This document shows positions 1,068-37,966 of a stretch of DNA of 64,000 nt, in pieces. The first letter of the stretch is position 1. Each line of letters opens with the position of its first letter. Both the position numbers and the translations under genes were made by a program. The stretch is from the NCBI GenBank assembly GCA_002269645.1, contig NIVC01001338.1:246639-310638 (forward strand), given 5' to 3'. This DNA comes from Macrostomum lignano (Eukaryota). The notes beneath the pieces were generated by a model. It ran no database searches and was not told where the DNA came from. It saw only the letters and a program-made list of their open reading frames with translations.

Positions 1068-4000
1068 GATTCTAAGAATGGAATCTAAGGGATTCTAAGA
1101 ATGGAATCTAAGGGATTCTAAGAATGGAATCTGGTGGATTCTAAGAATGGAATCTGGTGGATTCTAAGAATGGAATCTGGTGGATTCTAAGAATGGAATC
1201 TGGGGGATTCTAAGAATGGAATCTGAAGAATTCTAAGAATGGAATCTGGTGGATTCTAAGAATGGAATCTGGTGGATTCTAAGAATAGAATCTGGTGGAT
1301 TCTAAGAATAGAATCTGGTGGATTCTAAGAATGGAATCTGGGCGATTCTAAGAATGGAATCTGGGCGATTCTAAGAATGGAATCTGGTAGATTCTAAGAA
1401 TGGAATCTGGTGGATTCTAAGAATAGAATCTGGTGGATTCTAAGAATAGAATCTGGTGGATTCTAAGAATAGAATCTGGTGGATTCTAAGAATGGAATCT
1501 GGTGGATTCTAAGAATGGAATCTGGGGATTCTAAGAATGGAATCTGGAGGATTCTAAGAATGGATCTGGTGGATTCTAAGAATGGATCTGGTGGATTCTA
1601 AGAATGGAATCTGGTGGATTCTAAGAACTCAATCTAGGGGATTCTTAGAATGTAATCTGGTGGATTCTAAGAATTCAATCTAGGGGATTCTAAGAATGGA
1701 ATCTGGTGGATTCTAAGAATGGAATCTGGTGGATTCTAAGAATGGAATCTGGGGATTCTAAGAATGGAATCTGGGGATTCTAAGAATGGAATCTGGTGGA
1801 TTCTAAGAATGGAATCTGGTGGATTCTAAGAATGGAATCTGGTGGATTCTAAGAATGGAATCTGGGGATTCTAAGAATGGAATCTGGTGGATTCTAAGAA
1901 TGGAATCTGGTGGATTCTAAGAATGGAATCTGGTGGATTCTAAGAATGGAATCTGGGCGATTCTAAGAATGGAATCTGGTGGATTCTAAGAATGGAATCT
2001 GGGGATTCTAAGAATGGAATCTGGGGATTCTAAGAATGGAATCTGGTGGATTCTAAGAATGGAATCTGGTAGATTCTAAGAATCAATCTGGGGATTCTAG
2101 AATGTAATCTGGGGATTCTAAGAATGGAATCTGGGGATTCTAAGAATGGAATCTGGGGATTCTAAGAATGGAATCTGGTGGATTCTAAGAATGGAATCTG
2201 GTGGATTCTAAGAATGGAATCTGGGGGATTCTAAGAATGGAATCTGGAGGATTCTAAGAATGGAATCTGGGGGATTCTAAGAATGGAATCTGGTGGATTC
2301 TAAGAATGGAATCTGATGGACTCTAAGAATGGAATGTGGTGGATTCTAAGAATGGAATCTGGGGGATTCTAAGAATGGAATCTGGTGGATCTAAGAATGG
2401 AATCTGGGGATTCTAAGAATGGAATCTGGTGGATTCTAAGAATGGAATCTGGGGATTCTAAGAATGGAATCTGGATTCTAAGAATGGAATCTGGGGATTC
2501 TAAGAATGGAATCTGATGGACTCTAAGAATGGAATGTGGTGGATTCTAAGAATGGAATCTGGGGATTCTAAGAATGGAATCTGGTGGATCTAAGAATGGA
2601 ATCTGGGCGATTCTAAGAATGGAATCTGGTGGATTCTAAGAATGGAATCTGGGGGATTCTAAGAATGGAATCTGAAGAATTCTAAGAATGGAATCTGGTG
2701 GATTCTAAGAATGGAATCTGGTGGATTCTAAGAATGGAATCTGGGGGATTCTAAGAATAGAATCTGGTGGATTCTAAGAATGGAATCTGGGCGATTCTAA
2801 GAATGGAATCTGGGCGATTCTAAGAATGGAATCTGGAGGATTCTAAGAATGGAATCTGGTGGATTCTAAGAATGGAATCTGGTGGATTCTAAGAATGGAA
2901 TCTGGTGGATTCTAAGAATCAATCTGGGGATTCTAGAATGTAATCTGGTGGATTCTAAGAATCAATCTGGGGATTCTAGAATGGAATCTGGTGGATTCTA
3001 AGAATGGAATCTGGGGATTCTAAGAATGGAATCTGGGGATTCTAAGAATGGAATCTGGTGGATTCTAAGAATGGAATCTGGGGATTCTAAGAATGGAATC
3101 TGGATTCTAAGAATGGAATCTGGTGGATTCTAAGAATGGAATCTGGTGGATTCTAAGAATGGAATCTGGTGGATTCTAAGAATGAATCTGGTGGATTCTA
3201 AGAATGGAATCTGGGGATTCTAAGAATGGAATCTGGGGATTCTAAGAATGGAATCTGGTGGATTCTAAGAATGGAATCTGGTGGATTCTAAGAATGGAAT
3301 CTGGTGGATTCTAAGAATGGAATCTGGGGATTCTAAGAATGGAATCTGGTGGATTCTAAGAATGGAATCTGGTGGATTCTAAGAATGGAATCTGGTGGAT
3401 TCTAAGAATGGAATCTGGGGATTCTAAGAATGGAATCTGGGGATTCTAAGAATGGAATCTGGTGGATTCTAAGAATGGAATCTGGTAGATTCTAAGAATC
3501 AATCTGGGGATTCTAGAATGGAATCTGGTGGATTCTAAGAATGGAATCTGGGGATTCTAAGAATGGAATCTGGGGATTCTAAGAATGGAATCTGGGGATT
3601 CTAAGAATGGAATCTGGTGGATTCTAAGAATGGAATCTGGTGGATTCTAAGAATGGAATCTGGGGGATTCTAAGAATGGAATCTGGAGGATTCTAAGAAT
3701 GGAATCTGGGGGATTCTAAGAATGGAATCTGGTGGATTCTAAGAATGGAATCTGATGGACTCTAAGAATGGAATCTGGGGGATTCTAAGAATGGAATCTG
3801 GTATTCTAAGAATGGAATCTGGGGATTCTAAGAATGGAATCTGGTGGATTCTAAGAATGGAATCTGGAGATTCTAAGAATGGAATCTGGGGATTCTAAGA
3901 ATGGAATCTGGTGGATTCTAAGAATGGAATCTGGGGATTCTAAGAATGGAATCTGGGGATTCTAAGAATGGAATCTGGATTCTAAGAATGGAATCTGGTG

Positions 4001-7000
4001 GATTCTAAGAATGGAATCTGGTGGATTCTAAGAATCAATCTGGGGATTCTAGAATGGAATCTGGTGGATTCTAAGAATCAATCTAGGGGATTCTAGAATG
4101 TAATCTGGTGGATTCTAAGAATTCAATCTGGGGATTCTAAGAATGGAATCTGGGGATTCTAAGAATGGAATCTGGTGGATTCTAAGAATGGAATCTGGGG
4201 ATTCTAAGAATGGAATCTGGATTCTAAGAATGGAATCTGGTGGATTCTAAGAATGGAATCTGGTGGATTCTAAGAATGGAATCTGGTGGATTCTAAGAAT
4301 AATCTGGTGGATTCTAAGAATGGAATCTGGGGATTCTAAGAATGGAATCTGGGGATTCTAAGAATGGAATCTGGTGGATTCTAAGAATGGAATCTGGTGG
4401 ATTCTAAGAATGGAATCTGGTGGATTCTAAGAATGGAATCTGGGGATTCTAAGAATGGAATCTGGTGGATTCTAAGAATGGAATCTGGTGGATTCTAAGA
4501 ATGGAATCTGGTGGATTCTAAGAATGGAATCTGGGGATTCTAAGAATGGAATCTGGGGATTCTAAGAATGGAATCTGGTGGATTCTAAGAATGGAATCTG
4601 GTAGATTCTAAGAATCAATCTGGGGATTCTAGAATGGAATCTGGTGGATTCTAAGAATGGAATCTGGGGATTCTAAGAATGGAATCTGGGGATTCTAAGA
4701 ATGGAATCTGGGGATTCTAAGAATGGAATCTGGTGGATTCTAAGAATGGAATCTGGTGGATTCTAAGAATGGAATCTGGGGGATTCTAAGAATGGAATCT
4801 GGAGGATTCTAAGAATGGAATCTGGGGGATTCTAAGAATGGAATCTGGTGGATTCTAAGAATGGAATCTGATGGACTCTAAGAATGGAATCTGGGGGATT
4901 CTAAGAATGAAATCTGGTAGATTGTAAGAATGGAATCTGGGGGATTCTAAGAATGGAATCTGGTGGATTCTAAGAATGGAATCTGGAGAATTCTAAGAAT
5001 GGAAACTGGGCGATTCTAAGAATGGAATCTGGTGGATTCTAAAAATGGAATCTGGAGGATTCTAAGAATGGAATCTGATGGATTCTAAGAATGGAATCTG
5101 GTGGATTCTAAGAATGGAATCTGGGGATTCTAAGAATGGAATCTGGTGGATTCTAAGAATGGAATCTGGGCGATTCTAAGAATGGAATCTGGTGGATTCT
5201 AAGAATGGAATCTGGGGGATTCTAAGAATGGAATCTGGATTCTAAGAATGGAATCTGGTGGATTCTAAGAATGGAATCTGGTGGATTCTAAGAATGGAAT
5301 CTGGTGGATTCTAAGAATAGAATCTGGTGGATTCTAAGAATGGAATCTGGGGATTCTAAGAATGGAATCTGGGGGATTCTAAGAATGGAATCTGGAGGAT
5401 TCTAAGAATGGAATCTGGTGGATTCTAAGAATGGAATCTGGTGGATTCTAAGAATGGAATCTGGTGGATTCTAAGAATCAATCTGGGGATTCTAGAATGG
5501 AATCTGGTGGATTCTAAGAATCAATCTGGGGATTCTAAGAATGGAATCTGGTGGATTCTAAGAATGGAATCTGGGGATTCTAAGAATGGAATCTGGGGAT
5601 TCTAAGAATGGAATCTGGTGGATTCTAAGAATGGAATCTGGGGATTCTAAGAATGGAATCTGGATTCTAAGAATGGAATCTGGTGGATTCTAAGAATGGA
5701 ATCTGGTGGATTCTAAGAATGGAATCTGGTGGATTCTAAGAATGGAATCTGGTGGATTCTAAGAATGGAATCTGGGGATTCTAAGAATGGAATCTGGGGA
5801 TTCTAAGAATGGAATCTGGTGGATTCTAAGAATGGAATCTGGTGGATTCTAAGAATGGAATCTGGGGATTCTAAGAATGGAATCTGGATTCTAAGAATGG
5901 AATCTGGTGGATTCTAAGAATGGAATCTGGTGGATTCTAAGAATGGAATCTGGTGGATTCTAAGAATGGAATCTGGGGATTCTAAGAATGGAATCTGGTG
6001 GATTCTAAGAATGGAATCTGGGGATTCTAAGAATGGAATCTGGTGGATTCTAAGAATGGAATCTGGGGATTCTAAGAATGGAATCTGGGGATTCTAAGAA
6101 TGGAATCTGGTGGATTCTAAGAATGGAATCTGGGGATTCTAAGAATGGAATCTGGTGGATTCTAAGAATGGAATCTGGGGATTCTAAGAATGGAATCTGG
6201 TGGATTCTAAGAATGGAATCTGGATTCTAAGAATGGAATCTGGTGGATTCTAAGAATGGAATCTGGTGGATTCTAAGAATGGAATCTGGTGGATTCTAAG
6301 AATGGAATCTGGTGGATTCTAAGAATGGAATCTGGTGGATTCTAAGAATGGAATCTGGGGATTCTAAGAATGGAATCTGGGGATTCTAAGAATGGAATCT
6401 GGGGATTCTAAGAATGGAATCTGGTGGATTCTAAGAATGGAATCTGGTGGATTCTAAGAATGGAATCTGGTGGATTCTAAGAATCAATCTGGGGATTCTA
6501 AGAATGGAATCTGGTGGATTCTAAGAATCAATCTGGGGATTCTAAGAATGGAATCTGGTGGATTCTAAGAATGGAATCTGGGGATTCTAAGAATGGAATC
6601 TGGGGATTCTAAGAATGGAATCTGGATTCTAAGAATGGAATCTGGTGGATTCTAAGAATGGAATCTGGTGGATTCTAAGAATGGAATCTGGTGGATTCTA
6701 AGAATGAATCTGGTGGATTCTAAGAATGGAATCTGGGGATTCTAAGAATGGAATCTGGGGATTCTAAGAATGGAATCTGGTGGATTCTAAGAATGGAATC
6801 TGGTGGATTCTAAGAATGGAATCTGGTGGATTCTAAGAATGGAATCTGGGGATTCTAAGAATGGAATCTGGTGGATTCTAAGAATGGAATCTGGTGGATT
6901 CTAAGAATGGAATCTGGTGGATTCTAAGAATGGAATCTGGGGATTCTAAGAATGGAATCTGGGGATTCTAAGAATGGAATCTGGTGGATTCTAAGAATGG

Positions 7001-10000
7001 AATCTGGTAGATTCTAAGAATCAATCTGGGGATTCTAGAATGGAATCTGGTGGATTCTAAGAATTCAATCTGGGGATTCTAAGAATGGAATCTGGGGATT
7101 CTAAGAATGGAATCTGGGGATTCTAAGAATGGAATCTGGTGGATTCTAAGAATGGAATCTGGTGGATTCTAAGAATGGAATCTGGGGGATTCTAAGAATG
7201 GAATCTGGAGGATTCTAAGAATGGAATCTGGGGGATTCTAAGAATGGAATCTGGTGGATTCTAAGAATGGAATCTGATGGACTCTAAGAATGGAATCTGG
7301 GGGATTCTAAGAATGAAATCTGGTAGATTGTAAGAATGGAATCTGGGGATTCTAAGAATGGAATCTGGTGGATTCTAAGAATGGAATCTGGAGAATTCTA
7401 AGAATGGAATCTGGGGATTCTAAGAATGGAATCTGGTGGATTCTAAAATGGAATCTGGGGATTCTAAGAATGGAATCTGATGGATTCTAAGAATGGAATC
7501 TGGTGGATTCTAAGAATGGAATCTGGGGATTCTAAGAATGGAATCTGGTGGATTCTAAGAATGGAATCTGGGGATTCTAAGAATGGAATCTGGTGGATTC
7601 TAAGAATGGAATCTGGGGATTCTAAGAATGGAATCTGGATTCTAAGAATGGAATCTGGTGGATTCTAAGAATGGAATCTGGTGGATTCTAAGAATGGAAT
7701 CTGGTGGATTCTAAGAATGGAATCTGGTGGATTCTAAGAATGGAATCTGGGGATTCTAAGAATGGAATCTGGGGATTCTAAGAATGGAATCTGGGGATTC
7801 TAAGAATGGAATCTGGTGGATTCTAAGAATGGAATCTGGTGGATTCTAAGAATGGAATCTGGTGGATTCTAAGAATGGAATCTGGGGATTCTAAGAATGG
7901 AATCTGGTGGATTCTAAGAATCAATCTGGGGATTCTAAGAATGGAATCTGGTGGATTCTAAGAATGGAATCTGGGGATTCTAAGAATGGAATCTGGGGAT
8001 TCTAAGAATGGAATCTGGTGGATTCTAAGAATGGAATCTGGGGATTCTAAGAATGGAATCTGGATTCTAAGAATGGAATCTGGTGGATTCTAAGAATGGA
8101 ATCTGGTGGATTCTAAGAATGGAATCTGGTGGATTCTAAGAATGGAATCTGGTGGATTCTAAGAATGGAATCTGGGGATTCTAAGAATGGAATCTGGGGA
8201 TTCTAAGAATGGAATCTGGTGGATTCTAAGAATGGAATCTGGTGGATTCTAAGAATGGAATCTGGTGGATTCTAAGAATGGAATCTGGGGATTCTAAGAA
8301 TGGAATCTGGTGGATTCTAAGAATGGAATCTGGTGGATTCTAAGAATGGAATCTGGTGGATTCTAAGAATGGAATCTGGGGATTCTAAGAATGGAATCTG
8401 GATTCTAAGAATGGAATCTGGTGGATTCTAAGAATGGAATCTGGTGGATTCTAAGAATGGAATCTGGTGGATTCTAAGAATGGAATCTGGTGGATTCTAA
8501 GAATGGAATCTGGGGATTCTAAGAATGGAATCTGGGGATTCTAAGAATGGAATCTGGTGGATTCTAAGAATGGAATCTGGTGGATTCTAAGAATGGAATC
8601 TGGTGGATTCTAAGAATGGAATCTGGGGATTCTAAGAATGGAATCTGGTGGATTCTAAGAATGGAATCTGGTGGATTCTAAGAATGGAATCTGGTGGATT
8701 CTAAGAATGGAATCTGGTGGATTCTAAGAATGGAATCTGGTGGATTCTAAGAATGGAATCTGGGGATTCTAAGAATGGAATCTGGGGATTCTAAGAATGG
8801 AATCTGGATTCTAAGAATGGAATCTGGTGGATTCTAAGAATGGAATCTGGTGGATTCTAAGAATGGAATCTGGTGGATTCTAAGAATGGAATCTGGGGAT
8901 TCTAAGAATGGAATCTGGTGGATTCTAAGAATGGAATCTGGGGATTCTAAGAATGGAATCTGGTGGATTCTAAGAATGGAATCTGGGGATTCTAAGAATG
9001 GAATCTGGGGATTCTAAGAATGGAATCTGGTGGATTCTAAGAATGGAATCTGGGGATTCTAAGAATGGAATCTGGATTCTAAGAATGGAATCTGGTGGAT
9101 TCTAAGAATGGAATCTGGTGGATTCTAAGAATGGAATCTGGTGGATTCTAAGAATGGAATCTGGTGGATTCTAAGAATGGAATCTGGGGATTCTAAGAAT
9201 GGAATCTGGGGATTCTAAGAATGGAATCTGGTGGATTCTAAGAATGGAATCTGGTGGATTCTAAGAATGGAATCTGGTGGATTCTAAGAATGGAATCTGG
9301 GGATTCTAAGAATGGAATCTGGTGGATTCTAAGAATGGAATCTGGTGGATTCTAAGAATGGAATCTGGTGGATTCTAAGAATGGAATCTGGGGATTCTAA
9401 GAATGGAATCTGGGGATTCTAAGAATGGAATCTGGTGGATTCTAAGAATGGAATCTGGTGGATTCTAAGAATGGAATCTGGGGATTCTAAGAATGGAATC
9501 TGGTGGATTCTAAGAATGGAATCTGGGGATTCTAAGAATGGAATCTGGGGATTCTAAGAATGGAATCTGGGGATTCTAAGAATGGAATCTGGTGGATTCT
9601 AAGAATGGAATCTGGTGGATTCTAAGAATGGAATCTGGGGATTCTAAGAATGGAATCTGGGGATTCTAAGAATGGAATCTGGGGATTCTAAGAATGGAAT
9701 CTGGTGGATTCTAAGAATGGAATCTGGTGGATTCTAAGAATGGAATCTGGGGATTCTAAGAATGGAATCTGGTGATTCTAAGAATGGAATCTGGGGATTC
9801 TAAGAATGGAATCTGGTGGATTCTAAGAATGGAATCTGGGATTCTAAGAATGGAATCTGGGGATTCTAAGAATGGAATCTGGTGGATTCTAAGAATGGAA
9901 TCTGGGGATTCTAAGAATGGAATCTGGGATTCTAAGAATGGAATCTGGGGATTCTAAGAATGGAATCTGGGGATTCTAAGAATGGAATCTGGTGGATTCT

Positions 10001-13000
10001 AAGAATGGAATCTGGGGATTCTAAGAATGGAATCTGGTGGATTCTAAGAATGGAATCTGGGGATTCTAAGAATGGAATCTGGATTCTAAGAATGGAATCT
10101 GGTGGATTCTAAGAATGGAATCTGGTGGATTCTAAGAATGGAATCTGGTGGATTCTAAGAATGGAATCTGGTGGATTCTAAGAATGGAATCTGGGGATTC
10201 TAAGAATGGAATCTGGGGATTCTAAGAATGGAATCTGGGGATTCTAAGAATGGAATCTGGTGGATTCTAAGAATGGAATCTGGTGGATTCTAAGAATGGA
10301 ATCTGGTGGATTCTAAGAATGGAATCTGGGGATTCTAAGAATGGAATCTGGTGGATTCTAAGAATGGAATCTGGGGATTCTAAGAATGGAATCTGGTGGA
10401 TTCTAAGAATGGAATCTGGGGATTCTAAGAATGGAATCTGGGGATTCTAAGAATGGAATCTGGTGGATTCTAAGAATGGAATCTGGGGATTCTAAGAATG
10501 GAATCTGGATTCTAAGAATGGAATCTGGTGGATTCTAAGAATGGAATCTGGTGGATTCTAAGAATGGAATCTGGTGGATTCTAAGAATGGAATCTGGGGA
10601 TTCTAAGAATGGAATCTGGGGATTCTAAGAATGGAATCTGGGGATTCTAAGAATGGAATCTGGTGGATTCTAAGAATGGAATCTGGTGGATTCTAAGAAT
10701 GGAATCTGGTGGATTCTAAGAATGGAATCTGGGGATTCTAAGAATGGAATCTGGTGGATTCTAAGAATGGAATCTGGTGGATTCTAAGAATGGAATCTGG
10801 TGGATTCTAAGAATGGAATCTGGGGATTCTAAGAATGGAATCTGGTGGATTCTAAGAATGGAATCTGTGGATTCTAAGAATGGAATCTGGGGATTCTAAG
10901 AATGGAATCTGGGATTCTAAGAATGGAATCTGGGGATTCTAAGAATGGAATCTGGTGGATTCTAAGAATGGAATCTGGGGATTCTAAGAATGGAATCTGG
11001 GGATTCTAAGAATGGAATCTGGTGGATTCTAAGAATGGAATCTGGGGATTCTAAGAATGGAATCTGGGGATTCTAAGAATGGAATCTGGTGGATTCTAAG
11101 AATGGAATCTGGGGATTCTAAGAATGGAATCTGGTGGATTCTAAGAATGGAATCTGGGGATTCTAAGAATGGAATCTGGTGGATTCTAAGAATGGAATCT
11201 GGGGATTCTAAGAATGGAATCTGGATTCTAAGAATGGAATCTGGTGGATTCTAAGAATGGAATCTGGTGGATTCTAAGAATGGAATCTGGTGGATTCTAA
11301 GAATGGAATCTGGTGGATTCTAAGAATGGAATCTGGGGATTCTAAGAATGGAATCTGGGGATTCTAAGAATGGAATCTGGGGATTCTAAGAATGGAATCT
11401 GGTGGATTCTAAGAATGGAATCTGGTGGATTCTAAGAATGGAATCTGGTGGATTCTAAGAATGGAATCTGGGGATTCTAAGAATGGAATCTGGTGGATTC
11501 TAAGAATGGAATCTGGGGATTCTAAGAATGGAATCTGGTGGATTCTAAGAATGGAATCTGGGGATTCTAAGAATGGAATCTAATTCTAAGAATGGAATCT
11601 GGTGGATTCTAAGAATGGAATCTGGGGATTCTAAGAATGGAATCTGGATTCTAAGAATGGAATCTGGTGGATTCTAAGAATGGAATCTGGTGGATTCTAA
11701 GAATGGAATCTGGTGGATTCTAAGAATGGAATCTGGTGGATTCTAAGAATGGAATCTGGGGATTCTAAGAATGGAATCTGGGGATTCTAAGAATGGAATC
11801 TGGGGATTCTAAGAATGGAATCTGGTGGATTCTAAGAATGGAATCTGGGGATTCTAAGAATGGAATCTGGGGATTCTAAGAATGGAATCTGGTGGATTCT
11901 AAGAATGGAATCTGGGGATTCTAAGAATGGAATCTGGGGATTCTAAGAATGGAATCTGGTGGATTCTAAGAATGGAATCTGGGGATTCTAAGAATGGAAT
12001 CTGGTGGATTCTAAGAATGGAATCTGGGGATTCTAAGAATGGAATCTGGGGATTCTAAGAATGGAATCTGGGGATTCTAAGAATGGAATCTGGATTCTAA
12101 GAATGGAATCTGGTGGATTCTAAGAATGGAATCTGGTGGATTCTAAGAATGGAATCTGGTGGATTCTAAGAATGGAATCTGGTGGATTCTAAGAATGGAA
12201 TCTGGGGATTCTAAGAATGGAATCTGGGGATTCTAAGAATGGAATCTGGGGATTCTAAGAATGGAATCTGGTGGATTCTAAGAATGGAATCTGGTGGATT
12301 CTAAGAATGGAATCTGGTGGATTCTAAGAATGGAATCTGGGGATTCTAAGAATGGAATCTGGTGGATTCTAAGAATGGAATCTGGGGATTCTAAGAATGG
12401 AATCTGGTGGATTCTAAGAATGGAATCTGGGGATTCTAAGAATGGAATCTGGGGATTCTAAGAATGGAATCTGGTGGATTCTAAGAATGGAATCTGGGGA
12501 TTCTAAGAATGGAATCTGGGGATTCTAAGAATGGAATCTGGTGGATTCTAAGAATGGAATCTGGTGGATTCTAAGAATGGAATCTGGTGGATTCTAAGAA
12601 TGGAATCTGGTGGATTCTAAGAATGGAATCTGGGGATTCTAAGAATGGAATCTGGGGATTCTAAGAATGGAATCTGGGGATTCTAAGAATGGAATCTGGG
12701 GATTCTAAGAATGGAATCTGGTGGATTCTAAGAATGGAATCTGGTGGATTCTAAGAATGGAATCTGGTGGATTCTAAGAATGGAATCTGGTGGATTCTAA
12801 GAATGGAATCTGGTGGATTCTAAGAATGGAATCTGGGGATTCTAAGAATGGAATCTGGGGATTCTAAGAATGGAATCTGGTGGATTCTAAGAATGGAATC
12901 TGGGGATTCTAAGAATGGAATCTGGTGGATTCTAAGAATGGAATCTGGGGATTCTAAGAATGGAATCTGGGGATTCTAAGAATGGAATCTGGGGATTCTA

Positions 13001-16000: not shown

Positions 16001-19000
16001 CTAAGAATGGAATCTGGTGGATTCTAAGAATGGAATCTGGGGATTCTAAGAATGGAATCTGGGGATTCTAAGAATGGAATCTGGTGGATTCTAAGAATGG
16101 AATCTGGGGATTCTAAGAATGGAATCTGGGATTCTAAGAATGGAATCTGGTGGATTCTAAGAATGGAATCTGGGGATTCTAAGAATGGAATCTGGTGGAT
16201 TCTAAGAATGGAATCTGGGGATTCTAAGAATGGAATCTGGTGGATTCTAAGAATGGAATCTGGGGATTCTAAGAATGGAATCTGGATTCTAAGAATGGAA
16301 TCTGGTGGATTCTAAGAATGGAATCTGGTGGATTCTAAGAATGGAATCTGGTGGATTCTAAGAATGGAATCTGGGGATTCTAAGAATGGAATCTGGGGAT
16401 TCTAAGAATGGAATCTGGGGATTCTAAGAATGGAATCTGGTGGATTCTAAGAATGGAATCTGGGGATTCTAAGAATGGAATCTGGTGGATTCTAAGAATG
16501 GAATCTGGGGATTCTAAGAATGGAATCTGGTGGATTCTAAGAATGGAATCTGGTGGATTCTAAGAATGGAATCTGGGGATTCTAAGAATGGAATCTGGTG
16601 GATTCTAAGAATGGAATCTGGGGATTCTAAGAATGGAATCTGGGGATTCTAAGAATGGAATCTGGTGGATTCTAAGAATGGAATCTGGGGATTCTAAGAA
16701 TGGAATCTGGTGGATTCTAAGAATGGAATCTGGGGATTCTAAGAATGGAATCTGGTGGATTCTAAGAATGGAATCTGGGGATTCTAAGAATGGAATCTGG
16801 ATTCTAAGAATGGAATCTGGTGGATTCTAAGAATGGAATCTGGTGGATTCTAAGAATGGAATCTGGTGGATTCTAAGAATGGAATCTGGTGGATTCTAAG
16901 AATGGAATCTGGGGATTCTAAGAATGGAATCTGGGGATTCTAAGAATGGAATCTGGTGGATTCTAAGAATGGAATCTGGTGGATTCTAAGAATGGAATCT
17001 GGTGGATTCTAAGAATGGAATCTGGGGATTCTAAGAATGGAATCTGGTGGATTCTAAGAATGGAATCTGGGGATTCTAAGAATGGAATCTGGTGGATTCT
17101 AAGAATGGAATCTGGTGGATTCTAAGAATGGAATCTGGGGATTCTAAGAATGGAATCTGGTGGATTCTAAGAATGGAATCTGGGGATTCTAAGAATGGAA
17201 TCTGGGGATTCTAAGAATGGAATCTGGGGATTCTAAGAATGGAATCTGGGGATTCTAAGAATGGAATCTGGTGGATTCTAAGAATGGAATCTGGGGATTC
17301 TAAGAATGGAATCTGGTGGATTCTAAGAATGGAATCTGGGGATTCTAAGAATGGAATCTGGTGGATTCTAAGAATGGAATCTGGTGGATTCTAAGAATGG
17401 AATCTGGGGATTCTAAGAATGGAATCTGGTGGATTCTAAGAATGGAATCTGGGGATTCTAAGAATGGAATCTGGTGGATTCTAAGAATGGAATCTGGGGA
17501 TTCTAAGAATGGAATCTGGGGATTCTAAGAATGGAATCTGGGGATTCTAAGAATGGAATCTGGGGATTCTAAGAATGGAATCTGGTGGATTCTAAGAATG
17601 GAATCTGGGGATTCTAAGAATGGAATCTGGTGGATTCTAAGAATGGAATCTGGGGATTCTAAGAATGGAATCTGGGATTCTAAGAATGGAATCTGGGGAT
17701 TCTAAGAATGGAATCTGGTGGATTCTAAGAATGGAATCTGGGGATTCTAAGAATGGAATCTGGGATTCTAAGAATGGAATCTGGGATTCTAAGAATGGAA
17801 TCTGGTGGATTCTAAGAATGGAATCTGGTGGATTCTAAGAATGGAATCTGGTGGATTCTAAGAATGGAATCTGGGGATTCTAAGAATGGAATCTGGTGGA
17901 TTCTAAGAATGGAATCTGGGGATTCTAAGAATGGAATCTGGGGATTCTAAGAATGGAATCTGGTGGATTCTAAGAATGGAATCTGGTGGATTCTAAGAAT
18001 GGAATCTGGTGGATTCTAAGAATGGAATCTGGGGATTCTAAGAATGGAATCTGGTGGATTCTAAGAATGGAATCTGGGGATTCTAAGAATGGAATCTGGT
18101 GGATTCTAAGAATGGAATCTGGGGATTCTAAGAATGGAATCTGGGGATTCTAAGAATGGAATCTGGGGATTCTAAGAATGGAATCTGGGGATTCTAAGAA
18201 TGGAATCTGGTGGATTCTAAGAATGGAATCTGGGGATTCTAAGAATGGAATCTGGGGATTCTAAGAATGGAATCTGGTGGATTCTAAGAATCAATCTGGG
18301 GATTCTAAGAATGGAATCTGGTGGATTCTAAGAATGGAATCTGGGGATTCTAAGAATGGAATCTGGTGGATTCTAAGAATGGAATCTGGGGATTCTAAGA
18401 ATGGAATCTGGGGATTCTAAGAATGGAATCTGGGGATTCTAAGAATGGAATCTGGTGGATTCTAAGAATGGAATCTGGTGGATTCTAAGAATGGAATCTG
18501 GGGATTCTAAGAATGGAATCTGGTGGATTCTAAGAATGGAATCTGGTGGATTCTAAGAATGGAATCTGGGGATTCTAAGAATGGAATCTGGTGGATTCTA
18601 AGAATGGAATCTGGGGATTCTAAGAATGGAATCTGGGGATTCTAAGAATGGAATCTGGGGATTCTAAGAATGGAATCTGGGGATTCTAAGAATGGAATCT
18701 GGTGGATTCTAAGAATGGAATCTGGGGATTCTAAGAATGGAATCTGGTGGATTCTAAGAATGGAATCTGGGATTCTAAGAATGGAATCTGGGGATTCTAA
18801 GAATGGAATCTGGTGGATTCTAAGAATGGAATCTGGGGATTCTAAGAATGGAATCTGGTGGATTCTAAGAATGGAATCTGGGGATTCTAAGAATGGAATC
18901 TGGGGATTCTAAGAATGGAATCTGGGGATTCTAAGAATGGAATCTGGGGATTCTAAGAATGGAATCTGGTGGATTCTAAGAATGGAATCTGGTGGATTCT

Positions 19001-22000
19001 AAGAATGGAATCTGGGATTCTAAGAATGGAATCTGGTGGATTCTAAGAATGGAATCTGGGGATTCTAAGAATGGAATCTGGTGGATTCTAAGAATGGAAT
19101 CTGGGGATTCTAAGAATGGAATCTGGTGGATTCTAAGAATGGAATCTGGGGATTCTAAGAATGGAATCTGGTGGATTCTAAGAATGGAATCTGGTGGATT
19201 CTAAGAATGGAATCTGGTGGATTCTAAGAATGGAATCTGGGGATTCTAAGAATGGAATCTGGTGGATTCTAAGAATGGAATCTGGGGATTCTAAGAATGG
19301 AATCTGGTGGATTCTAAGAATGGAATCTGGTGGATTCTAAGAATGGAATCTGGGGATTCTAAGAATGGAATCTGGTGGATTCTAAGAATGGAATCTGGGG
19401 ATTCTAAGAATGGAATCTGGGGATTCTAAGAATGGAATCTGGTGGATTCTAAGAATGGAATCTGGGGATTCTAAGAATGGAATCTGGTGGATTCTAAGAA
19501 TGGAATCTGGGGATTCTAAGAATGGAATCTGGGGATTCTAAGAATGGAATCTGGTGGATTCTAAGAATGGAATCTGGGGATTCTAAGAATGGAATCTGGT
19601 GGATTCTAAGAATGGAATCTGGGGATTCTAAGAATGGAATCTGGTGGATTCTAAGAATGGAATCTGGGGATTCTAAGAATGGAATCTGGATTCTAAGAAT
19701 GGAATCTGGTGGATTCTAAGAATGGAATCTGGTGGATTCTAAGAATGGAATCTGGTGGATTCTAAGAATGGAATCTGGTGGATTCTAAGAATGGAATCTG
19801 GGGATTCTAAGAATGGAATCTGGGGATTCTAAGAATGGAATCTGGTGGATTCTAAGAATGGAATCTGGGGATTCTAAGAATGGAATCTGGTGGATTCTAA
19901 GAATGGAATCTGGGGATTCTAAGAATGGAATCTGGTGGATTCTAAGAATGGAATCTGGGGATTCTAAGAATGGAATCTGGGGATTCTAAGAATGGAATCT
20001 GGTGGATTCTAAGAATGGAATCTGGGGATTCTAAGAATGGAATCTGGTGGATTCTAAGAATGGAATCTGGGGATTCTAAGAATGGAATCTGGTGGATTCT
20101 AAGAATGGAATCTGGTGGATTCTAAGAATGGAATCTGGGGATTCTAAGAATGGAATCTGGTGGATTCTAAGAATGGAATCTGGGGATTCTAAGAATGGAA
20201 TCTGGGGATTCTAAGAATGGAATCTGGGGATTCTAAGAATGGAATCTGGGGATTCTAAGAATGGAATCTGGTGGATTCTAAGAATGGAATCTGGGGATTC
20301 TAAGAATGGAATCTGGTGGATTCTAAGAATGGAATCTGGGGATTCTAAGAATGGAATCTGGTGGATTCTAAGAATGGAATCTGGGGATTCTAAGAATGGA
20401 ATCTGGGGATTCTAAGAATGGAATCTGGGGATTCTAAGAATGGAATCTGGGGATTCTAAGAATGGAATCTGGTGGATTCTAAGAATGGAATCTGGGGATT
20501 CTAAGAATGGAATCTGGTGGATTCTAAGAATGGAATCTGGGGATTCTAAGAATGGAATCTGGGATTCTAAGAATGGAATCTGGGGATTCTAAGAATGGAA
20601 TCTGGGGATTCTAAGAATGGAATCTGGGGATTCTAAGAATGGAATCTGGTGGATTCTAAGAATGGAATCTGGGGATTCTAAGAATGGAATCTGGGGATTC
20701 TAAGAATGGAATCTGGTGGATTCTAAGAATGGAATCTGGGGATTCTAAGAATGGAATCTGGTGGATTCTAAGAATGGAATCTGGGGATTCTAAGAATGGA
20801 ATCTGGGGATTCTAAGAATGGAATCTGGTGGATTCTAAGAATGGAATCTGGGGATTCTAAGAATGGAATCTGGTGGATTCTAAGAATGGAATCTGGGGAT
20901 TCTAAGAATGGAATCTGGATTCTAAGAATGGAATCTGGGGATTCTAAGAATGGAATCTGGTGGATTCTAAGAATGGAATCTGGTGGATTCTAAGAATGGA
21001 ATCTGGTGGATTCTAAGAATGGAATCTGGTGGATTCTAAGAATGGAATCTGGGGATTCTAAGAATGGAATCTGGGGATTCTAAGAATGGAATCTGGGGAT
21101 TCTAAGAATGGAATCTGGTGGATTCTAAGAATGGAATCTGGTGGATTCTAAGAATGGAATCTGGTGGATTCTAAGAATGGAATCTGGTGGATTCTAAGAA
21201 TGGAATCTGGGGATTCTAAGAATGGAATCTGGTGGATTCTAAGAATGGAATCTGGGGATTCTAAGAATGGAATCTGGTGGATTCTAAGAATGGAATCTGG
21301 GGATTCTAAGAATGGAATCTGGTGGATTCTAAGAATGGAATCTGGGGATTCTAAGAATGGAATCTGGATTCTAAGAATGGAATCTGGTGGATTCTAAGAA
21401 TGGAATCTGGGGATTCTAAGAATGGAATCTGGTGGATTCTAAGAATGGAATCTGGTGGATTCTAAGAATGGAATCTGGGGATTCTAAGAATGGAATCTGG
21501 TGGATTCTAAGAATGGAATCTGGGATTCTAAGAATGGAATCTGGGGATTCTAAGAATGGAATCTGGTGGATTCTAAGAATGGAATCTGGTGGATTCTAAG
21601 AATGGAATCTGGGGATTCTAAGAATGGAATCTGGTGGATTCTAAGAATGGAATCTGGGGATTCTAAGAATGGAATCTGGTGGATTCTAAGAATGGAATCT
21701 GGGGATTCTAAGAATGGAATCTGGGGATTCTAAGAATGGAATCTGGGGATTCTAAGAATGGAATCTGGGGATTCTAAGAATGGAATCTGGTGGATTCTAA
21801 GAATGGAATCTGGGGATTCTAAGAATGGAATCTGGTGGATTCTAAGAATGGAATCTGGGGATTCTAAGAATGGAATCTGGGGATTCTAAGAATGGAATCT
21901 GGTGGATTCTAAGAATGGAATCTGGTGGATTCTAAGAATGGAATCTGGTGGATTCTAAGAATGGAATCTGGGGGATTCTAAGAATGGAATCTGGTGGATT

Positions 22001-25000
22001 CTAAGAATGGAATCTGGTGGATTCTAAGAATGGAATCTGGGGATTCTAAGAATGGAATCTGGTGGATTCTAAGAATGGAATCTGGAGGATTCTAAGAATG
22101 GAATCTGGTGGATTCTAAGAATGGAATCTGGTGGATTCTAAGAATGGAATCTGGGGATTCTAAGAATGGAATCTGGTGGATTCTAAGAATGGAATCTGGT
22201 GGATTCTAAGAATGGAATCTGGGGATTCTAAGAATGGAATCTGGGGATTCTAAGAATGGAATCTGGGGATTCTAAGAATGGAATCTGGTGGATTCTAAGA
22301 ATGGAATCTGGGGATTCTAAGAATGGAATCTGGTGGATTCTAAGAATGGAATCTGGTGGATTCTAAGAATGGAATCTGGGGATTCTAAGAATGGAATCTG
22401 GTGGATTCTAAGAATGGAATCTGGTGGATTCTAAGAATGGAATCTGGTGGATTCTAAGAATGGAATCTGGTGGATTCTAAGAATGGAATCTGGGGATTCT
22501 AAGAATGGAATCTGGTGGATTCTAAGAATGGAATCTGGTGGATTCTAAGAATGGAATCTGGTGGATTCTAAGAATGGAATCTGGTGGATTCTAAGAATGG
22601 AATCTGGTGGATTCTAAGAATGGAATCTGGGGATTCTAAGAATGGAATCTGGTGGATTCTAAGAATGGAATCTGGGGATTCTAAGAATGGAATCTGGTGG
22701 ATTCTAAGAATGGAATCTGGGGATTCTAAGAATGGAATCTGGTGGATTCTAAGAATGGAATCTGGTGGATTCTAAGAATGGAATCTGGGGATTCTAAGAA
22801 TGGAATCTGGGGATTCTAAGAATGGAATCTGGGGATTCTAAGAATGGAATCTGGGGATTCTAAGAATGGAATCTGGTGGATTCTAAGAATGGAATCTGGG
22901 GATTCTAAGAATGGAATCTGGGGATTCTAAGAATGGAATCTGGTGGATTCTAAGAATGGAATCTGGTGGATTCTAAGAATGGAATCTGGGGATTCTAAGA
23001 ATGGAATCTGGGGATTCTAAGAATGGAATCTGGGGATTCTAAGAATGGAATCTGGTGGATTCTAAGAATGGAATCTGGGGATTCTAAGAATGGAATCTGG
23101 GGATTCTAAGAATGGAATCTGGGGATTCTAAGAATGGAATCTGGGGATTCTAAGAATGGAATCTGGGGATTCTAAGAATGGAATCTGGGGATTCTAAGAA
23201 TGGAATCTGGGGATTCTAAGAATGGAATCTGGTGGATTCTAAGAATGGAATCTGGGGATTCTAAGAATGGAATCTGGGGATTCTAAGAATGGAATCTGGG
23301 GATTCTAAGAATGGAATCTGGTGGATTCTAAGAATGGAATCTGGGGATTCTAAGAATGGAATCTGGGGATTCTAAGAATGGAATCTGGTGGATTCTAAGA
23401 ATGGAATCTGGTGGATTCTAAGAATGGAATCTGGGGATTCTAAGAATGGAATCTGGTGGATTCTAAGAATGGAATCTGGGGATTCTAAGAATGGAATCTG
23501 GTGGATTCTAAGAATGGAATCTGGGGATTCTAAGAATGGAATCTGGTGGATTCTAAGAATGGAATCTGGTATTCTAAGAATGGAATCTGGGGATTCTAAG
23601 AATGGAATCTGGGGATTCTAAGAATGGAATCTGGGGATTCTAAGAATGGAATCTGGTGGATTCTAAGAATGGAATCTGGGGATTCTAAGAATGGAATCTG
23701 GGGATTCTAAGAATGGAATCTGGTGGATTCTAAGAATGGAATCTGGGGATTCTAAGAATGGAATCTGGTGGATTCTAAGAATGGAATCTGGGGATTCTAA
23801 GAATGGAATCTGGTGGATTCTAAGAATGGAATCTGGGGATTCTAAGAATGGAATCTGGGGATTCTAAGAATGGAATCTGGGGATTCTAAGAATGGAATCT
23901 GGTGGATTCTAAGAATGGAATCTGGGGATTCTAAGAATGGAATCTGGTGGATTCTAAGAATGGAATCTGGTGGATTCTAAGAATGGAATCTGGTGGATTC
24001 TAAGAATGGAATCTGGTGGATTCTAAGAATGGAATCTGGTGGATTCTAAGAATGGAATCTGGTGGATTCTAAGAATGGAATCTGGTGGATTCTAAGAATG
24101 GAATCTGGTGGATTCTAAGAATGGAATCTGGTGGATTCTAAGAATGGAATCTGGGGATTCTAAGAATGGAATCTGGGGATTCTAAGAATGGAATCTGGTG
24201 GATTCTAAGAATGGAATCTGGGGATTCTAAGAATGGAATCTGGGGATTCTAAGAATGGAATCTGGGGATTCTAAGAATGGAATCTGGGGATTCTAAGAAT
24301 GGAATCTGGGGATTCTAAGAATGGAATCTGGGGATTCTAAGAATGGAATCTGGTGGATTCTAAGAATGGAATCTGGGGATTCTAAGAATGGAATCTGGGG
24401 ATTCTAAGAATGGAATCTGGGATTCTAAGAATGGAATCTGGGGATTCTAAGAATGGAATCTGGGGATTCTAAGAATGGAATCTGGGGATTCTAAGAATGG
24501 AATCTGGGGATTCTAAGAATGGAATCTGGGGATTCTAAGAATGGAATCTGGGGATTCTAAGAATGGAATCTGGTGGATTCTAAGAATGGAATCTGGATTC
24601 TAAGAATGGAATCTGGTGGATTCTAAGAATGGAATCTGGTGGATTCTAAGAATGGAATCTGGGATTCTAAGAATGGAATCTGGTGGATTCTAAGAATGGA
24701 ATCTGGTGGATTCTAAGAATGGAATCTGGTGGATTCTAAGAATGGAATCTGGGGATTCTAAGAATGGAATCTGGTGGATTCTAAGAATGGAATCTGGGGA
24801 TTCTAAGAATGGAATCTGGGGATTCTAAGAATGGAATCTGGTGGATTCTAAGAATGGAATCTGGTGGATTCTAAGAATGGAATCTGGTGGATTCTAAGAA
24901 TGGAATCTGGTGGATTCTAAGAATGGAATCTGGTGGATTCTAAGAATGGAATCTGGGGATTCTAAGAATGGAATCTGGTGGATTCTAAGAATGGAATCTG

Positions 25001-28000
25001 GTGGATTCTAAGAATGGAATCTGGTGGATTCTAAGAATGGAATCTGGTGGATTCTAAGAATGGAATCTGGTGGATTCTAAGAATGGAATCTGGTGGATTC
25101 TAAGAATGGAATCTGGTGGATTCTAAGAATGGAATCTGGTGGATTCTAAGAATGGAATCTGGTGGATTCTAAGAATGGAATCTGGTGGATTCTAAGAATG
25201 GAATCTGGTGGATTCTAAGAATCAATCTGGGGATTCTAAGAATGTAATCTGGTGGATTCTAAGAATCAATCTGGGGATTCTAAGAATGTAATCTGGTGGA
25301 TTCTAAGAATGGAATCTGGGGATTCTAAGAATGGAATCTGGGGATTCTAAGAATGGAATCTGGGGATTCTAAGAATGGAATCTGGGGATTCTAAGAATGG
25401 AATCTGGTGGATTCTAAGAATGGAATCTGGGGATTCTAAGAATGGAATCTGGGGATTCTAAGAATGGAATCTGGTGGATTCTAAGAATGGAATCTGGGGA
25501 TTCTAAGAATGGAATCTGGTAGGATTCTAAGAATCAATCTGGGGATTCTAAGAATGTAATCTGGTGGATTCTAAGAATGGAATCTGGGGATTCTAAGAAT
25601 GGAATCTGGGGATTCTAAGAATGGAATCTGGGGATTCTAAGAATGGAATCTGGGGATTCTAAGAATGGAATCTGGTGGATTCTAAGAATGGAATCTGGGG
25701 GATTCTAAGAATGGAATCTGGTGGATTCTAAGAATGGAATCTGGTGGATTCTAAGAATCAATCTGGGGATTCTAAGAATGGAATCTGGTGGATTCTAAGA
25801 ATGGAATCTGGGGATTCTAAGAATGGAATCTGGGGATTCTAAGAATGGAATCTGGGGATTCTAAGAATGGAATCTGGGGATTCTAAGAATGGAATCTGGT
25901 GGATTCTAAGAATGGAATCTGGGGGATTCTAAGAATGGAATCTGGAGGATTCTAAGAATGGAATCTGGGGGATTCTAAGAATGGAATCTGGTGGATTCTA
26001 AGAATGGAATCTGATGGACTTCTAAGAATGGAATCTGGGGATTCTAAGAATGGAATCTGGTAGGATTCTAAGAATGGAATCTGGGGGATTCTAAGAATGG
26101 AATCTGGTGGATTCTAAGAATGGAATCTGGAGAATTCTAAGAATGGAAACTGGGCGATTCTAAGAATGGAATCTGGTGGATTCTAAAAATGGAATCTGGA
26201 GGATTCTAAGAATGGAATCTGGGATTCTAAGAATGGAATCTGGTGGATTCTAAGAATGGAATCTGGGGATTCTAAGAATGGAATCTGGTGGACTCTAAGA
26301 ATGGAATCTGGGGATTCTAAGAATGGAATCTGGTGGATTCTAAGAATGGAATCTGGGGATTCTAAGAATGGAATCTGGATTCTAAGAATGGAATCTGGTG
26401 GATTCTAAGAATGGAATCTGGTGGATTCTAAGAATGGAATCTGGTGGATTCTAAGAATGGAATCTGGTGGATTCTAAGAATGGAATCTGGTGGATTCTAA
26501 GAATGGAATCTGGTGGATTCTAAGAATGGAATCTGGTAGATTCTAAGAATGGAATCTGGTGGATTCTAAGAATGGAATCTGGTGGATTCTAAGAATGGAA
26601 TCTGGGGGATTCTAAGAATAGAATCTGGTGGATTCTAAGAATGGAATCTGGTGGATTCTAAGAATGGAATCTGGGGGATTCTAAGAATGGAATCTGGAGG
26701 ATTCTAAGAATGGAATCTGGTGGATTCTAAGAATGGAATCTGGTGGATTCTAAGAATGGAATCTGGTGGATTCTAAGAACTCAATCTAGGGGATTCTTAG
26801 AATGTAATCTGGTGGATTCTAAGAACTCAATCTAGGGGATTCTTAGAATGTAATCTGGTGGATTCTAAGAATTCAATCTGGGGGATTCTAAGAATGGAAT
26901 CTGGGGATTCTAAGAATGGAATCTGGGGGATTCTAAGAATGGAATCTGGTGGATTCTAAGAATGGAATCTGGTGGATTCTAAGAATGGAATCTGGTGGAT
27001 TCTAAGAATGGAATCTGGAGGATTCTAAGAATGGAATCTGGTGGATTCTAAGAATGGAATCTGGTGGATTCTAAGAACTCAATCTAGGGGATTCTAAGAA
27101 TGGAATCTGGTGGATTCTAAGAACTCAATCTAGGGGATTCTTAGAATGTAATCTGGTGGATTCTAAGAATTCAATCTGGGGGATTCTAAGAATGGAATCT
27201 GGGGGATTCTAAGAATGATCTGGGGATTCTAAGAATGGAATCTGGTGGATTCTAAGAATGGAATCTGGGGGATTCTAAGAATGGAATCTGGTGGATTCTA
27301 AGAATGGAATCTGGAGAATTCTAAGAATGGAAACTGGGCGATTCTAAGAATGGAATCTGGTGGATTCTAAAAATGGAATCTGGAGGATTCTAAGAATGGA
27401 ATCTGATGGACTCTAAGAATGGAATGTGGTGGATTCTAAGAATGGAATCTGGGGGATTCTAAGAATGGAATCTGGTGGACTCTAAGAATGGAATCTGGGC
27501 GATTCTAAGAATGGAATCTGGTGGATTCTAAGAATGGAATCTGGGGGATTCTAAGAATGGAATCTGAAGAATTCTAAGAATGGAATCTGGTGGATTCTAA
27601 GAATGGAATCTGGTGGATTCTAAGAATGGAATCTGGTGGATTCTAAGAATAGAATCTGGTGGATTCTAAGAATGGAATCTGGGCGATTCTAAGAATGGAA
27701 TCTGGGCGATTCTAAGAATGGAATCTGGTAGATTCTAAGAATGGAATCTGGTGGATTCTAAGAATAGAATCTGGTGGATTCTAAGAATAGAATCTGGTGG
27801 ATTCTAAGAATAGAATCTGGTGGATTCTAAGAATGGAATCTGGTGGATTCTAAGAATGGAATCTGGGGGATTCTAAGAATGGAATCTGGAGGATTCTAAG
27901 AATGGATCTGGTGGATTCTAAGAATGGATCTGGTGGATTCTAAGAATGGAATCTGGTGGATTCTAAGAACTCAATCTAGGGGATTCTTAGAATGTAATCT

Positions 28001-28530
28001 GGTGGATTCTAAGAATTCAATCTGGGGGATTCTAAGAATGGAATCTGGGGGATTCTAAGAATGGAATCTGGTGGATTCTAAGAATGGAATCTGGGGGATT
28101 CTAAGAATGGAATCTGGTGGATTCTAAGAATGGAATCTGGTGGATTCTAAGAATGGAATCTGGTGGATTCTAAGAATGGAATCTGGGGATTCTAAGAATG
28201 GAATCTGGTGGATTCTAAGAATGGAATCTGGTGGATTCTAAGAATGGAATCTGGTGGATTCTAAGAATGGAATCTGGGGATTCTAAGAATGGAATCTGGT
28301 GGATCTAAGAATGGAATCTGGGGATTCTAAGAATGGAATCTGGGGGATTCTAAGAATGGAATCTGGGGGATTCTAAGAATGGAATCTGGGGGATTCTAAG
28401 AATGGAATCTGGGGGATTCTAAGAATGGAATCTGGGGGATGGAATCTGGGGGATTCTAAGAATGGAATCTGGGGGATTCTAAGAATGGAATCTGGTTCTA
28501 AGAATGGAATCTGTTCTAAGAATGGAATCA
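1068..28530. repeat. Satellite array, ~27.5 kb, roughly 1,200 monomers of GATTCTAAGAATGGAATCT + spacer (GGTG = 23 bp, GGG = 22 bp, rarer G, GG, GGGG)
   Basis: Continuous tandem repetition with diverged monomers at both edges and a homogeneous core; two HinfI (GANTC) sites per monomer. Confidence 0.98.
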
Positions 28531-28714
28531 GAGGAATTCTAGGAGTAGGGTTAGAAGACAGCTTCTAGGAGTAGAGAAGACAGCTGAAGATGAGGAGCGA
28601 AGGGTTAGAAGAACAGCTGTGTCAATTATATAAATTTGGCTAACGGACAATTCTAAGACTGAATCAGGTGCCTGCTCATGTCGAGTCGGTGGAATGAAGA
28701 GTATTGACACTCAC

Positions 28715-29136
28715 CGACTATTCAGTCGTTCGGCGAGTGTCTCAACCTGAGTTCTAGCCTGCATCAGCTCTTCATCGTACTTGGACGGAACGGCCTTATT
28801 GAAATTCGGCATGCCGGATATCCTGTTGTGCACCAGAAGCATCCGCATGTACAAGACGTAGGCTCGCTCCTCATCTCGTGCAACATGAAAGTACTTTTCC
28901 GCTGCGCTGAACAAATTGCCCAACAGTTTCATGCCCACAGCTGCACTGCCAACTGCGTGCACTGTGTAGGCTGCGCGCCGATTCAAATCGTTTACCGATC
29001 GGCCGAAATGCAGCGGCAACGGCTGCAGCGATGACTTGCGAGTTGATGCCGTCTTTGCTGGCATTAGCAACTGCTCAGACTGCGGCTGCTGCTGCTGCTG
29101 CTGCTGATCCTGCGGCTGCCGCGGCGGTTGACTCAT
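28715..29136 (-). CDS. USP8: USP8/UBPY N-terminal (dimerisation/MIT-like) exon; the gene continues towards lower coordinates
   Basis: LHFGRSVNDLNRR...ARDEERAYVLYMR...AERLNSR matches USP8 LYLSSSLKDLNKK...RDEERAYVLYMK...AERLSESLKLR. The ORF runs into a CG|GTGAGT donor at 28714; an acceptor TTCTCCAG lies at 29177-29176. Confidence 0.85.
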
Positions 29137-29389: not shown

Positions 29390-29613
<224 letters not shown>

Positions 29614-33311: not shown

Positions 33312-33360
33312 TCTAGACTTTAGAGTCTAGACTTTAGAATCTAGACTTTAGAGTCTAGAC
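33312..33360. repeat. 14-bp tandem repeat TCTAGACTTTAGAG x3.5
   Basis: Direct reading. Confidence 0.8.
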
Positions 33361-37323: not shown

Positions 37324-37725
<402 letters not shown>

Positions 37726-37931: not shown

Positions 37932-37966
37932 GTATGATTTGCGTCTTTATAGGCCACCGCCCACTC

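Follow-up and report, generated by a model that had tools for sequence, protein, structure and literature searches.

A 27.5-kb minisatellite array in Macrostomum lignano and its probable place within the first coding intron of a USP8 copy

A 64,000-nucleotide stretch of the Macrostomum lignano genome (GenBank assembly GCA_002269645.1, contig NIVC01001338.1, positions 246,639 to 310,638; hereafter the window) contains a 27.5-kb satellite array, one end of which lies close to the splice donor of a USP8 gene's first coding exon. Protein models from the same species place further USP8 sequence beyond the array, and it is likely that the array lies between exons 1 and 2 of a USP8 gene copy. With modest confidence, we favour the explanation that one USP8 copy of M. 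lignano has, in its first coding intron, a minisatellite that expanded passively and is tolerated. The finding is an ordinary one, and nothing points to a new biological system.

The satellite array and its flanks

The array occupies positions 1068-28541 of the window and was characterised on the minus strand, the sense strand of USP8, as approximately 1,200 head-to-tail units by Tandem Repeats Finder (TRF), a unit census, a variant map and a mismatch search. TRF reported positions 1068-28440/28513 as a repeat of period 23 (also 45) with 1,218 copies and 95% matches; degenerate units continue to 28541, giving a length of 27,474 bases. Splitting the array at the invariant core TCTAAGAAT produced 1,196 units, and the spacings between these anchors were almost only 23 bp (644) or 22 bp (465). 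The unit reads GATTCTAAGAATGGAATCTGG(T)G on the plus strand and CACCAGATTCCATTCTTAGAATC on the USP8-sense strand. Its most frequent version, TCTAAGAATGGAATCTGGTGGAT, ends in CTGGTGGAT and is present in 534 copies, and the other major form, ending in CTGGGGAT without the T, in 450 copies, the 22-mers and 23-mers being intermixed. The array thus has tandem, head-to-tail units of 22/23 bp in a single orientation, within the range of approximately 10-100 bp that defines the units of intronic variable number tandem repeats (VNTRs) or minisatellites.

The array is real, well beyond chance. With up to three mismatches allowed, 1,177 matches to the monomer were observed and none in 100 shuffles. No inverted satellite units were found in the array, all 1,177 close matches lying on the plus strand, and a search across the window allowing up to five substitutions found zero copies outside the array. 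The TRF call, the unit census and the shuffles therefore confirm an earlier sequence-only reading of the window, made before any database search, which had described a 27.5-kb array. The array contains no N bases, and the largest gap between anchors is at most 115 bp, so that no transposon interrupts it. Rare variant units gather within 2-6 kb of either edge, the core consists of the two main forms in a homogenised mixture, and a label map showed that some variant strings recur within the array. Such a layout, divergent at the edges and homogenised in the core, is the pattern expected of a natural array. No clean long higher-order period emerged from ungapped autocorrelation, since the intermixing of 22- and 23-bp units puts the phase in disorder. 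Within the satellite unit itself there is dyad symmetry (GATTC...GAATC and ATTCT-A-AGAAT), which could equally mark the binding site of a dimeric protein. A transposon origin of the array was considered and rejected, as its flanks are unique in the window and no transposable element termini adjoin it. The monomer string was not found in the literature that was searched, a paper on G-quadruplexes makes no mention of the repeat, and a metagenome scan with a satellite dimer gave 0 matches.

Between the array and the USP8 donor lie 173 bp (28542-28714, minus strand), delimited by direct reading and unique in the window by blastn, which would form the unique 5′ end of the putative intron. This segment holds decayed repeat-like units, namely two TTCTAGGAGTAG..AGAAGACAGC copies and AATTCTAAGACTGAATCAGGTG at approximately 28650, and it grades through degenerate units from the array into unique sequence. 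On the far side, the array is followed by a unique AT-rich spacer (480-1067, also compared by blastn) in which neither the open reading frame (ORF) list nor tblastn with USP8 fragments revealed a USP8 exon or a credible ORF. Beyond the spacer is a second, unrelated tandem array (5-479) with a 15-bp unit, AGGATGTGGGATTTG, present in approximately 32 copies with 82% matches by TRF. Only 1,067 bases of the window lie past the main array, and the 475 bases of the 15-bp array reach the window edge; the repeat-filled interval therefore extends past the window. Tandem arrays make up 97% of the visible part of the putative intron (27,474 + 475 of 28,714 bases). Rfam and tRNA scans of the non-array part of the window gave no matches.

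USP8 exon 1 and its predicted junction with exon 2

The exon next to the array is the first coding exon of a USP8 (UBPY) orthologue (28715-29136, minus strand), comprising 140 codons and 2 nt and carrying the Pfam domain PF08969. The corresponding ORF, 29136 to 28711 on the minus strand, encodes 141 residues, and residues 41-138 match Pfam USP8_dimer (PF08969) with E=6.3e-8 and 33.2 bits, against a cut-off of 24.6 bits. After a Q-rich N-terminus comes the greater part of the USP8 dimerisation (MIT-like) domain, and the second methionine, at codon 25 (MPAKTAS...), aligns with the human start. The reading frame ends ...CTG AAT AGT CG|GTGAGT, with 28715 as the final exon base. The 5′ splice donor GTGAGT (28709-28714, minus strand; TCG|GTGAGT) opens a phase 2 intron and is the sole GT[AG]AG on the sense strand within positions 1-28714. 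Exon 1 is intact, with an ATG, a conserved domain and a consensus donor. The sequence-only reading had recognised both the exon and its donor but put them approximately 185 bp from the array, a distance that we correct to 173 bp; it had also noted no in-frame exon between donor and array, and there is none in 28542-28714. Upstream of the exon, a perfect (AGAT)56 microsatellite (29390-29613; 100% matches by TRF) lies approximately 250 bp from the USP8 ATG, and an acceptor-like site (TTTCTCCAG|C) is found 44 nt from it. This site could serve spliced leader (SL) trans-splicing or act as a 5′UTR acceptor.

No further USP8 exons were found in 28542-28714 or 1-1067, either in the ORF list or by tblastn. 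When 1.84 billion representative proteins were searched exhaustively with HMMER, exon 1 had a single match, a Macrostomum lignano protein model of 1,325 residues (UniRef100_A0A1I8HPD5; here P0001), residues 916-980 of which are 97% identical to exon 1. P0001 maps to the window by tblastn in 13 colinear pieces, running from 62120 to 28714 on the minus strand, most of them 96-100% identical to the window and three 80-89% identical. Upstream of exon 1 it runs antisense through a beta-galactosidase gene, a long terminal repeat (LTR) retrotransposon and a Rac gene. To judge from this mapping, P0001 is a chimeric junk model of the window locus, or of an allele or duplicate with the same retrotransposon. 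The entry is labelled 'USP domain-containing protein', an annotation error worth flagging. Annotators should be warned that, in the only public protein model found to cover exon 1, the genuine USP8 exons come after antisense pieces of a retrotransposon and of neighbouring genes.

After '...ETLAERLNSR', at the end of exon 1, P0001 continues for 344 more residues ('YKTSRTIDELRGFESL ... GLTGLRNLGNSCYANCVLQCL...') that have no match in the window, and it thereby joins exon 1 in silico to 'YKTSRTIDELRG...', which we call exon 2. When the window was searched by tblastn with P0001 and four related models at E<=10, only noise was obtained past P0001 residue 981. These four further M. lignano fragments (P0002-P0005) had been recovered with the P0001 tail; P0002 and P0003 begin at or just ahead of 'YKTSRTIDELRG', and P0004 and P0005 cover the UCH Cys box. 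With the P0001 tail attached to exon 1, the USP8_dimer match covers profile positions 5-113 of 114 and is followed by a UCH start with its Cys box; the domain scores 33-35 bits, with exon 1 alone and with the tail, against the 24.6-bit cut-off. For spliced residues 39-147, the best PDB matches by phmmer were to the N-terminal domain of human USP8 (2A9U, 8Y9A), with E ~7e-8 in an alignment that runs through the junction, 'LNSR|YKTS' being aligned to human USP8 'LKLRYEEA'. P0003 starts with 'QSPNTANAIFS' ahead of 'YKTSR', and the last codons of this start back-translate to ...ATH TTY AG|Y; they may represent a pyrimidine-rich acceptor together with the single base that completes the phase-2 CG| codon. 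The predicted product of exons 1 and 2 reads ...ETLAERLNSRYKTSRTIDELRG... after MSQPPRQ/MPAKTAS. Matches to PF00443 (UCH) are present in the P0001 tail and in P0004 (GLRNLGNSCYANCVLQCL), all outside the window sequence, and tblastn with USP8 fragments found no UCH sequence in the window. The P0001 tail gave no match to the Pfam rhodanese domain at E<=0.01, the model sequence being possibly error-ridden.

Because the join restores a colinear USP8_dimer domain and aligns with human USP8, and because the acceptor suggested by P0003 fits, it is likely that the array lies between exons 1 and 2 of a USP8 gene copy. The proposal of the sequence-only reading, that the array fills a USP8 intron, thus gains from the P0001 join, which restores a domain colinear with that of human USP8; exon 2 is outside the window, and the window alone is insufficient to establish it.

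Several points weigh against the explanation that we favour. Exon 2 and its acceptor are both outside the window, and the visible intron is at least 28.7 kb long. P0001 is obviously a wrong, chimeric ab initio model and shows linkage and colinearity in some assembly rather than splicing. A few of its residues do not agree with the window (A to E in HVARDEE, for example), and its source may be an allele or a duplicate, or else an older assembly with the array collapsed or missing. Other USP8 copies exist, so that the copy in the window need not be functional, and the approximately 1,800 acceptor-like sites within the array could divert splicing, or SL trans-splicing, in M. lignano. No transcript-based protein spanning the junction was found by a word-indexed protein search, a result of little weight since that search also missed P0001. 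It did so even though the query was an exact 344-residue substring of P0001; its failure to find a match to exon 1 therefore carries equally little weight. No contigs encoding the exon-1 ORF, P0001, P0002 or P0004 are on record, a metagenome scan with USP8-tail peptides yielded 0 confirmed matches, and no paper combining Macrostomum and USP8 was found in the literature that was searched.

Sense-strand signals and neighbouring intronic arrays

The array had been described as rich in AG and poor in GT on the USP8-sense strand, and the counts agree with this description: 2,455 AG dinucleotides and 18 GT, the latter against approximately 785 expected from base composition. All 18 GTs are in poor contexts, such as AGA|GTCCAC and TGA|GTTCTT, and on the sense strand of the array there are 0 occurrences of GTRAGT and 0 of AATAAA/ATTAAA. 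Matches to a pyrimidine tract followed by AG number 1,831, and the array has acceptor-like sites such as CCATTCTTAG|AATC and CCACCAG|ATTC. The shortage of GT is a single observation, because one 23-mer with two G's has been copied 1,200 times. GT was absent in 46% of monomer shuffles of the same composition and in 20% of random 23-mers. The missing donors are not significant (P ~0.46), and the importance attached to them in the sequence-only reading does not survive this comparison. Moreover, the intronic arrays of the neighbouring Rac and beta-galactosidase genes all carry GT on their sense strands, so that no sign of selection against donors is to be seen in the window.

In the sense RNA of the array C is plentiful and G scarce (GC skew +0.55 on the plus strand). 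Multi-unit array RNA folds significantly better than shuffles on both strands, and far better on the antisense: the sense strand gave -14.2 kcal/mol per 92 nt (z = -3.2) and the antisense strand -33.9 kcal/mol (z = -6.9). The weak sense-strand fold is compatible with easy read-through and proves nothing.

Tandem arrays are also found in introns of the two neighbouring genes. The Rac-type GTPase gene (37420-38655, plus strand; 3 coding exons; Pfam Ras E=7e-35) carries in its last intron a 31-bp unit repeated 15.5 times (37964-38445, TRF). In the GH35 beta-galactosidase gene (56751-62114, plus strand; Pfam Glyco_hydro_35 E=1e-75), approximately 80% of intron 1 (~57504-58002) is taken up by (TAGT)101 (array 57535-57939), and the last intron holds 17 copies of a 28-bp unit (61131-61633) related to that of the Rac intron. 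Arrays are thus present in 1 of 2 Rac introns and 2 of approximately 3 beta-galactosidase introns, each 0.3-0.5 kb long. With intronic arrays so frequent in neighbouring genes, that of USP8 stands at the extreme end of a phenomenon common in the M. lignano genome. The Rac 31-mer and the 28-mer of the last beta-galactosidase intron are variants of one unit (CAGCCTCCCAGATC.CTCAGTTGCTG.GC), and therefore belong to a dispersed family of intronic tandem repeats.

These observations are in keeping with what is known of the genome. Of the M. lignano assembly, 15% is simple or tandem repeat and 21% LTR elements, the mean intron length is 1.1-1.4 kb, and 38.8% of genes are SL trans-spliced (PMC5730564). 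The visible putative USP8 intron, at 28.7 kb or more, is approximately 20-25 times as long as the species mean. In its present state, the finding is chiefly an illustration of how rich in repeats this genome is already known to be.

Other repeats in the window were recorded in passing. The LTR retrotransposon (51793-56511) is young, its 177-nt LTRs (51793-51969 and 56335-56511) being 100% identical; it has intact gag (DUF7041) and PR-RT-RNaseH-IN pol ORFs and lies approximately 240 bp upstream of the beta-galactosidase start codon. Directly after the beta-galactosidase stop codon is a purine-rich 25-bp array (62189-63221; approximately 42 copies of AGAGGGGCGGAGAGTGGAGGGAGAG) that gives long spurious ORFs on both strands. 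The start of P0001 (62120) lies slightly below this array and at the 3′ end of the beta-galactosidase gene, a position that may mark a contig or model break in an older assembly. Short arrays are present downstream of the Rac gene (39133-39451) and in the USP8-Rac intergenic region (33312-34099), with a 23-bp unit, AAACCACCTCTAGATTCACCCAC, in 14 copies and 28-bp units containing TCTAGAAT. Both share a TCTAGA(A/T)T-like core with TCTAAGAAT, a likeness that need not reflect a relationship.

Possible explanations and comparison with known systems

On balance, we lean towards passive expansion of a minisatellite as the origin of the array. A 22/23-bp repeat would have been amplified locally in tandem inside the intron that splits the USP8 dimerisation domain, leaving exon 2 ('YKTSRTIDELRG...') past the window on the same strand. 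If this USP8 copy is expressed, RNA polymerase II (Pol II) would presumably read straight through the array, taking approximately 10 extra minutes, and the normal spliceosome would join 28715 to the distant acceptor. Without GT donors or poly(A) signals, the array should be unable to create internal exons or premature 3′ ends. It would be tolerable because its sense strand lacks these signals and is C-rich, G-poor and weakly folded, and we infer that it is neutral. Dedicated machinery is neither required nor indicated.

An alternative that we consider unlikely is that the window holds a redundant or disabled copy. Of several USP8 copies or haplotypes in a partly polyploid genome, this would be one in which the expansion, or the satellite block as a whole, split exon 1 from the rest of the gene. 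Functional mRNA would come from another copy with a short intron, and the exon 1 in the window would be an orphan or poorly expressed. The sequenced DV1 line contains 180 Mb of duplicated blocks, non-repetitive and at least 95% identical (PMC5730564), and a second USP8 copy is to be expected. Three models (P0001-P0003) cover exon 2 and two (P0004-P0005) the start of UCH, with frameshift-like differences among them, and exon 1 is contained in only one. The framing of USP8 as a unique housekeeping gene in the sequence-only reading is accordingly not supported, given the duplicated blocks and the at least three fragmentary models that cover exon 2. However, the differences in P0002-P0005 resemble indel errors of early long-read assemblies rather than those of paralogues, and long disuse would not be expected to leave the 140-codon ORF of exon 1 intact, though no trace would be seen of a recent event. 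Less probable again is an assembly artefact, whereby the length of the array was inflated or deflated, or one of its junctions was falsely joined through repeats. Arrays as homogeneous as this one (95% matches) are hard to assemble, the M. lignano genome is notoriously so owing to its simple repeats (PMC5730564), and only 1 kb of window lies past the array, starting in another repeat. Yet both array edges decay gradually into unique sequence, with degenerate units in the flank, the variants are structured rather than random, there are no gaps, and an independent gene model has exon 1 and the USP8 exons downstream of it linked on a single strand.

We regard as very improbable a specialised expression system in the style of the Drosophila Y loops, in which USP8 would be transcribed across the satellite by means of dedicated RNA-binding factors or selected features such as a GT-free, acceptor-rich sense strand. 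The asymmetry of that strand (18 GT against 2,455 AG), its freedom from poly(A) signals and its weaker fold relative to the antisense would suit such a system, and satellite-containing introns in Drosophila do need the proteins Blanks and Heph (PMC6508613). The asymmetry is nonetheless a property of a single monomer (P ~0.46), the intronic arrays of neighbouring genes carry sense-strand GT, and no dedicated factor is encoded or hinted at anywhere in the window. The visible intron, moreover, is approximately 29 kb long, not hundreds of kb to Mb as given for the Drosophila introns in the account of PMC11207136. Scarcely more probable is a giant 'outron', a reading suggested by a 27-kb donor-free stretch with approximately 1,800 acceptor-like sites in a trans-splicing animal. 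If only satellites free of GT and poly(A) signals can expand in essential genes, a genome-wide orientation bias would be predicted; some USP8 transcription might then end in SL-capped satellite RNAs, or the array might act as a brake on elongation or timing. What probability remains falls to other arrangements, for example independent expression of exon 2 by SL trans-splicing. Should transcription of the array be confirmed, the locus would be a handy natural test case in a regenerating flatworm that is amenable to transgenesis. It would show how an animal with SL trans-splicing splices over tens of kb of homogeneous, acceptor-rich repeat, and what limit there is to the expansion of an intronic satellite in a constitutively needed gene.

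At ordinary Pol II elongation rates, approximately 29 kb is a matter of minutes. The suggestion that the locus represents an undescribed system is not upheld, given this short transit time, the arrays in introns of neighbouring genes and a comparable array in human CACNA1C (PMC13131567). To treat satellite-filled introns mainly as a peculiarity of the Drosophila Y chromosome is likewise too narrow, since the CACNA1C (PMC13131567) and FXN cases are known.

The closest parallels within the window are the Rac and beta-galactosidase intronic arrays, which like the USP8 array consist of tandem units of 23-31 bp in one orientation and which are entirely contained in introns of genes that look expressed; at 0.3-0.5 kb they are shorter by a factor of approximately 60 and much less homogeneous. 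Among human genes, pathogenic intronic repeat expansions include CNBP CCTG and ATXN10 ATTCT. A further case is the GAA expansion in an intron of FXN, as mentioned in PMC6508613. These too are pure arrays of several kb to tens of kb, in widely expressed genes in which transcription continues and splicing is largely preserved. Their units are only 3-6 bp long, however, and they are deleterious through an elongation block or RNA toxicity, whereas the USP8 array has a 23-bp unit and gives no hint of being harmful.

The Drosophila Y-linked fertility genes kl-3, kl-5 and ks-1 are described as having gigantic introns that contain satellites (Fingerhut et al. 2019, PMC6508621; PMC6508613; PMC11207136), with sizes given in PMC11207136 as hundreds of kb to Mb, approximately 1000 times the typical length. 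Their transcription takes most of spermatocyte development, and Blanks and Heph are needed for their expression (PMC6508613). As in those introns, almost the whole of the putative USP8 intron consists of tandem repeats (97% of the visible part), and transcription would have to cross the satellite between coding exons. Unlike them, the USP8 intron, with at least 28.7 kb visible, is approximately 20-25 times the mean length and falls short of their size, and USP8 is probably an autosomal, broadly used gene rather than a testis-specific one. Lampbrush-type loops, slow developmental timing and dedicated factors are traits of the Drosophila Y genes that are not indicated at the USP8 locus.

A closer analogue than the Drosophila Y-gene introns would be the VNTR of human CACNA1C. 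This repeat, TRACT, has a 30-bp unit and spans 3-30+ kb in intron 3 (PMC13131567, PMC11118589). Both arrays are composed of units of tens of bases, head-to-tail and in one orientation over tens of kb, with few, intermixed variants. TRACT resides in an intron of an essential gene that is normally spliced, and an intronic place is likewise probable for the USP8 array. In contrast to TRACT, the USP8 array nearly fills the visible intron, begins 173 bp from the donor, and has as its host a flatworm with SL trans-splicing.

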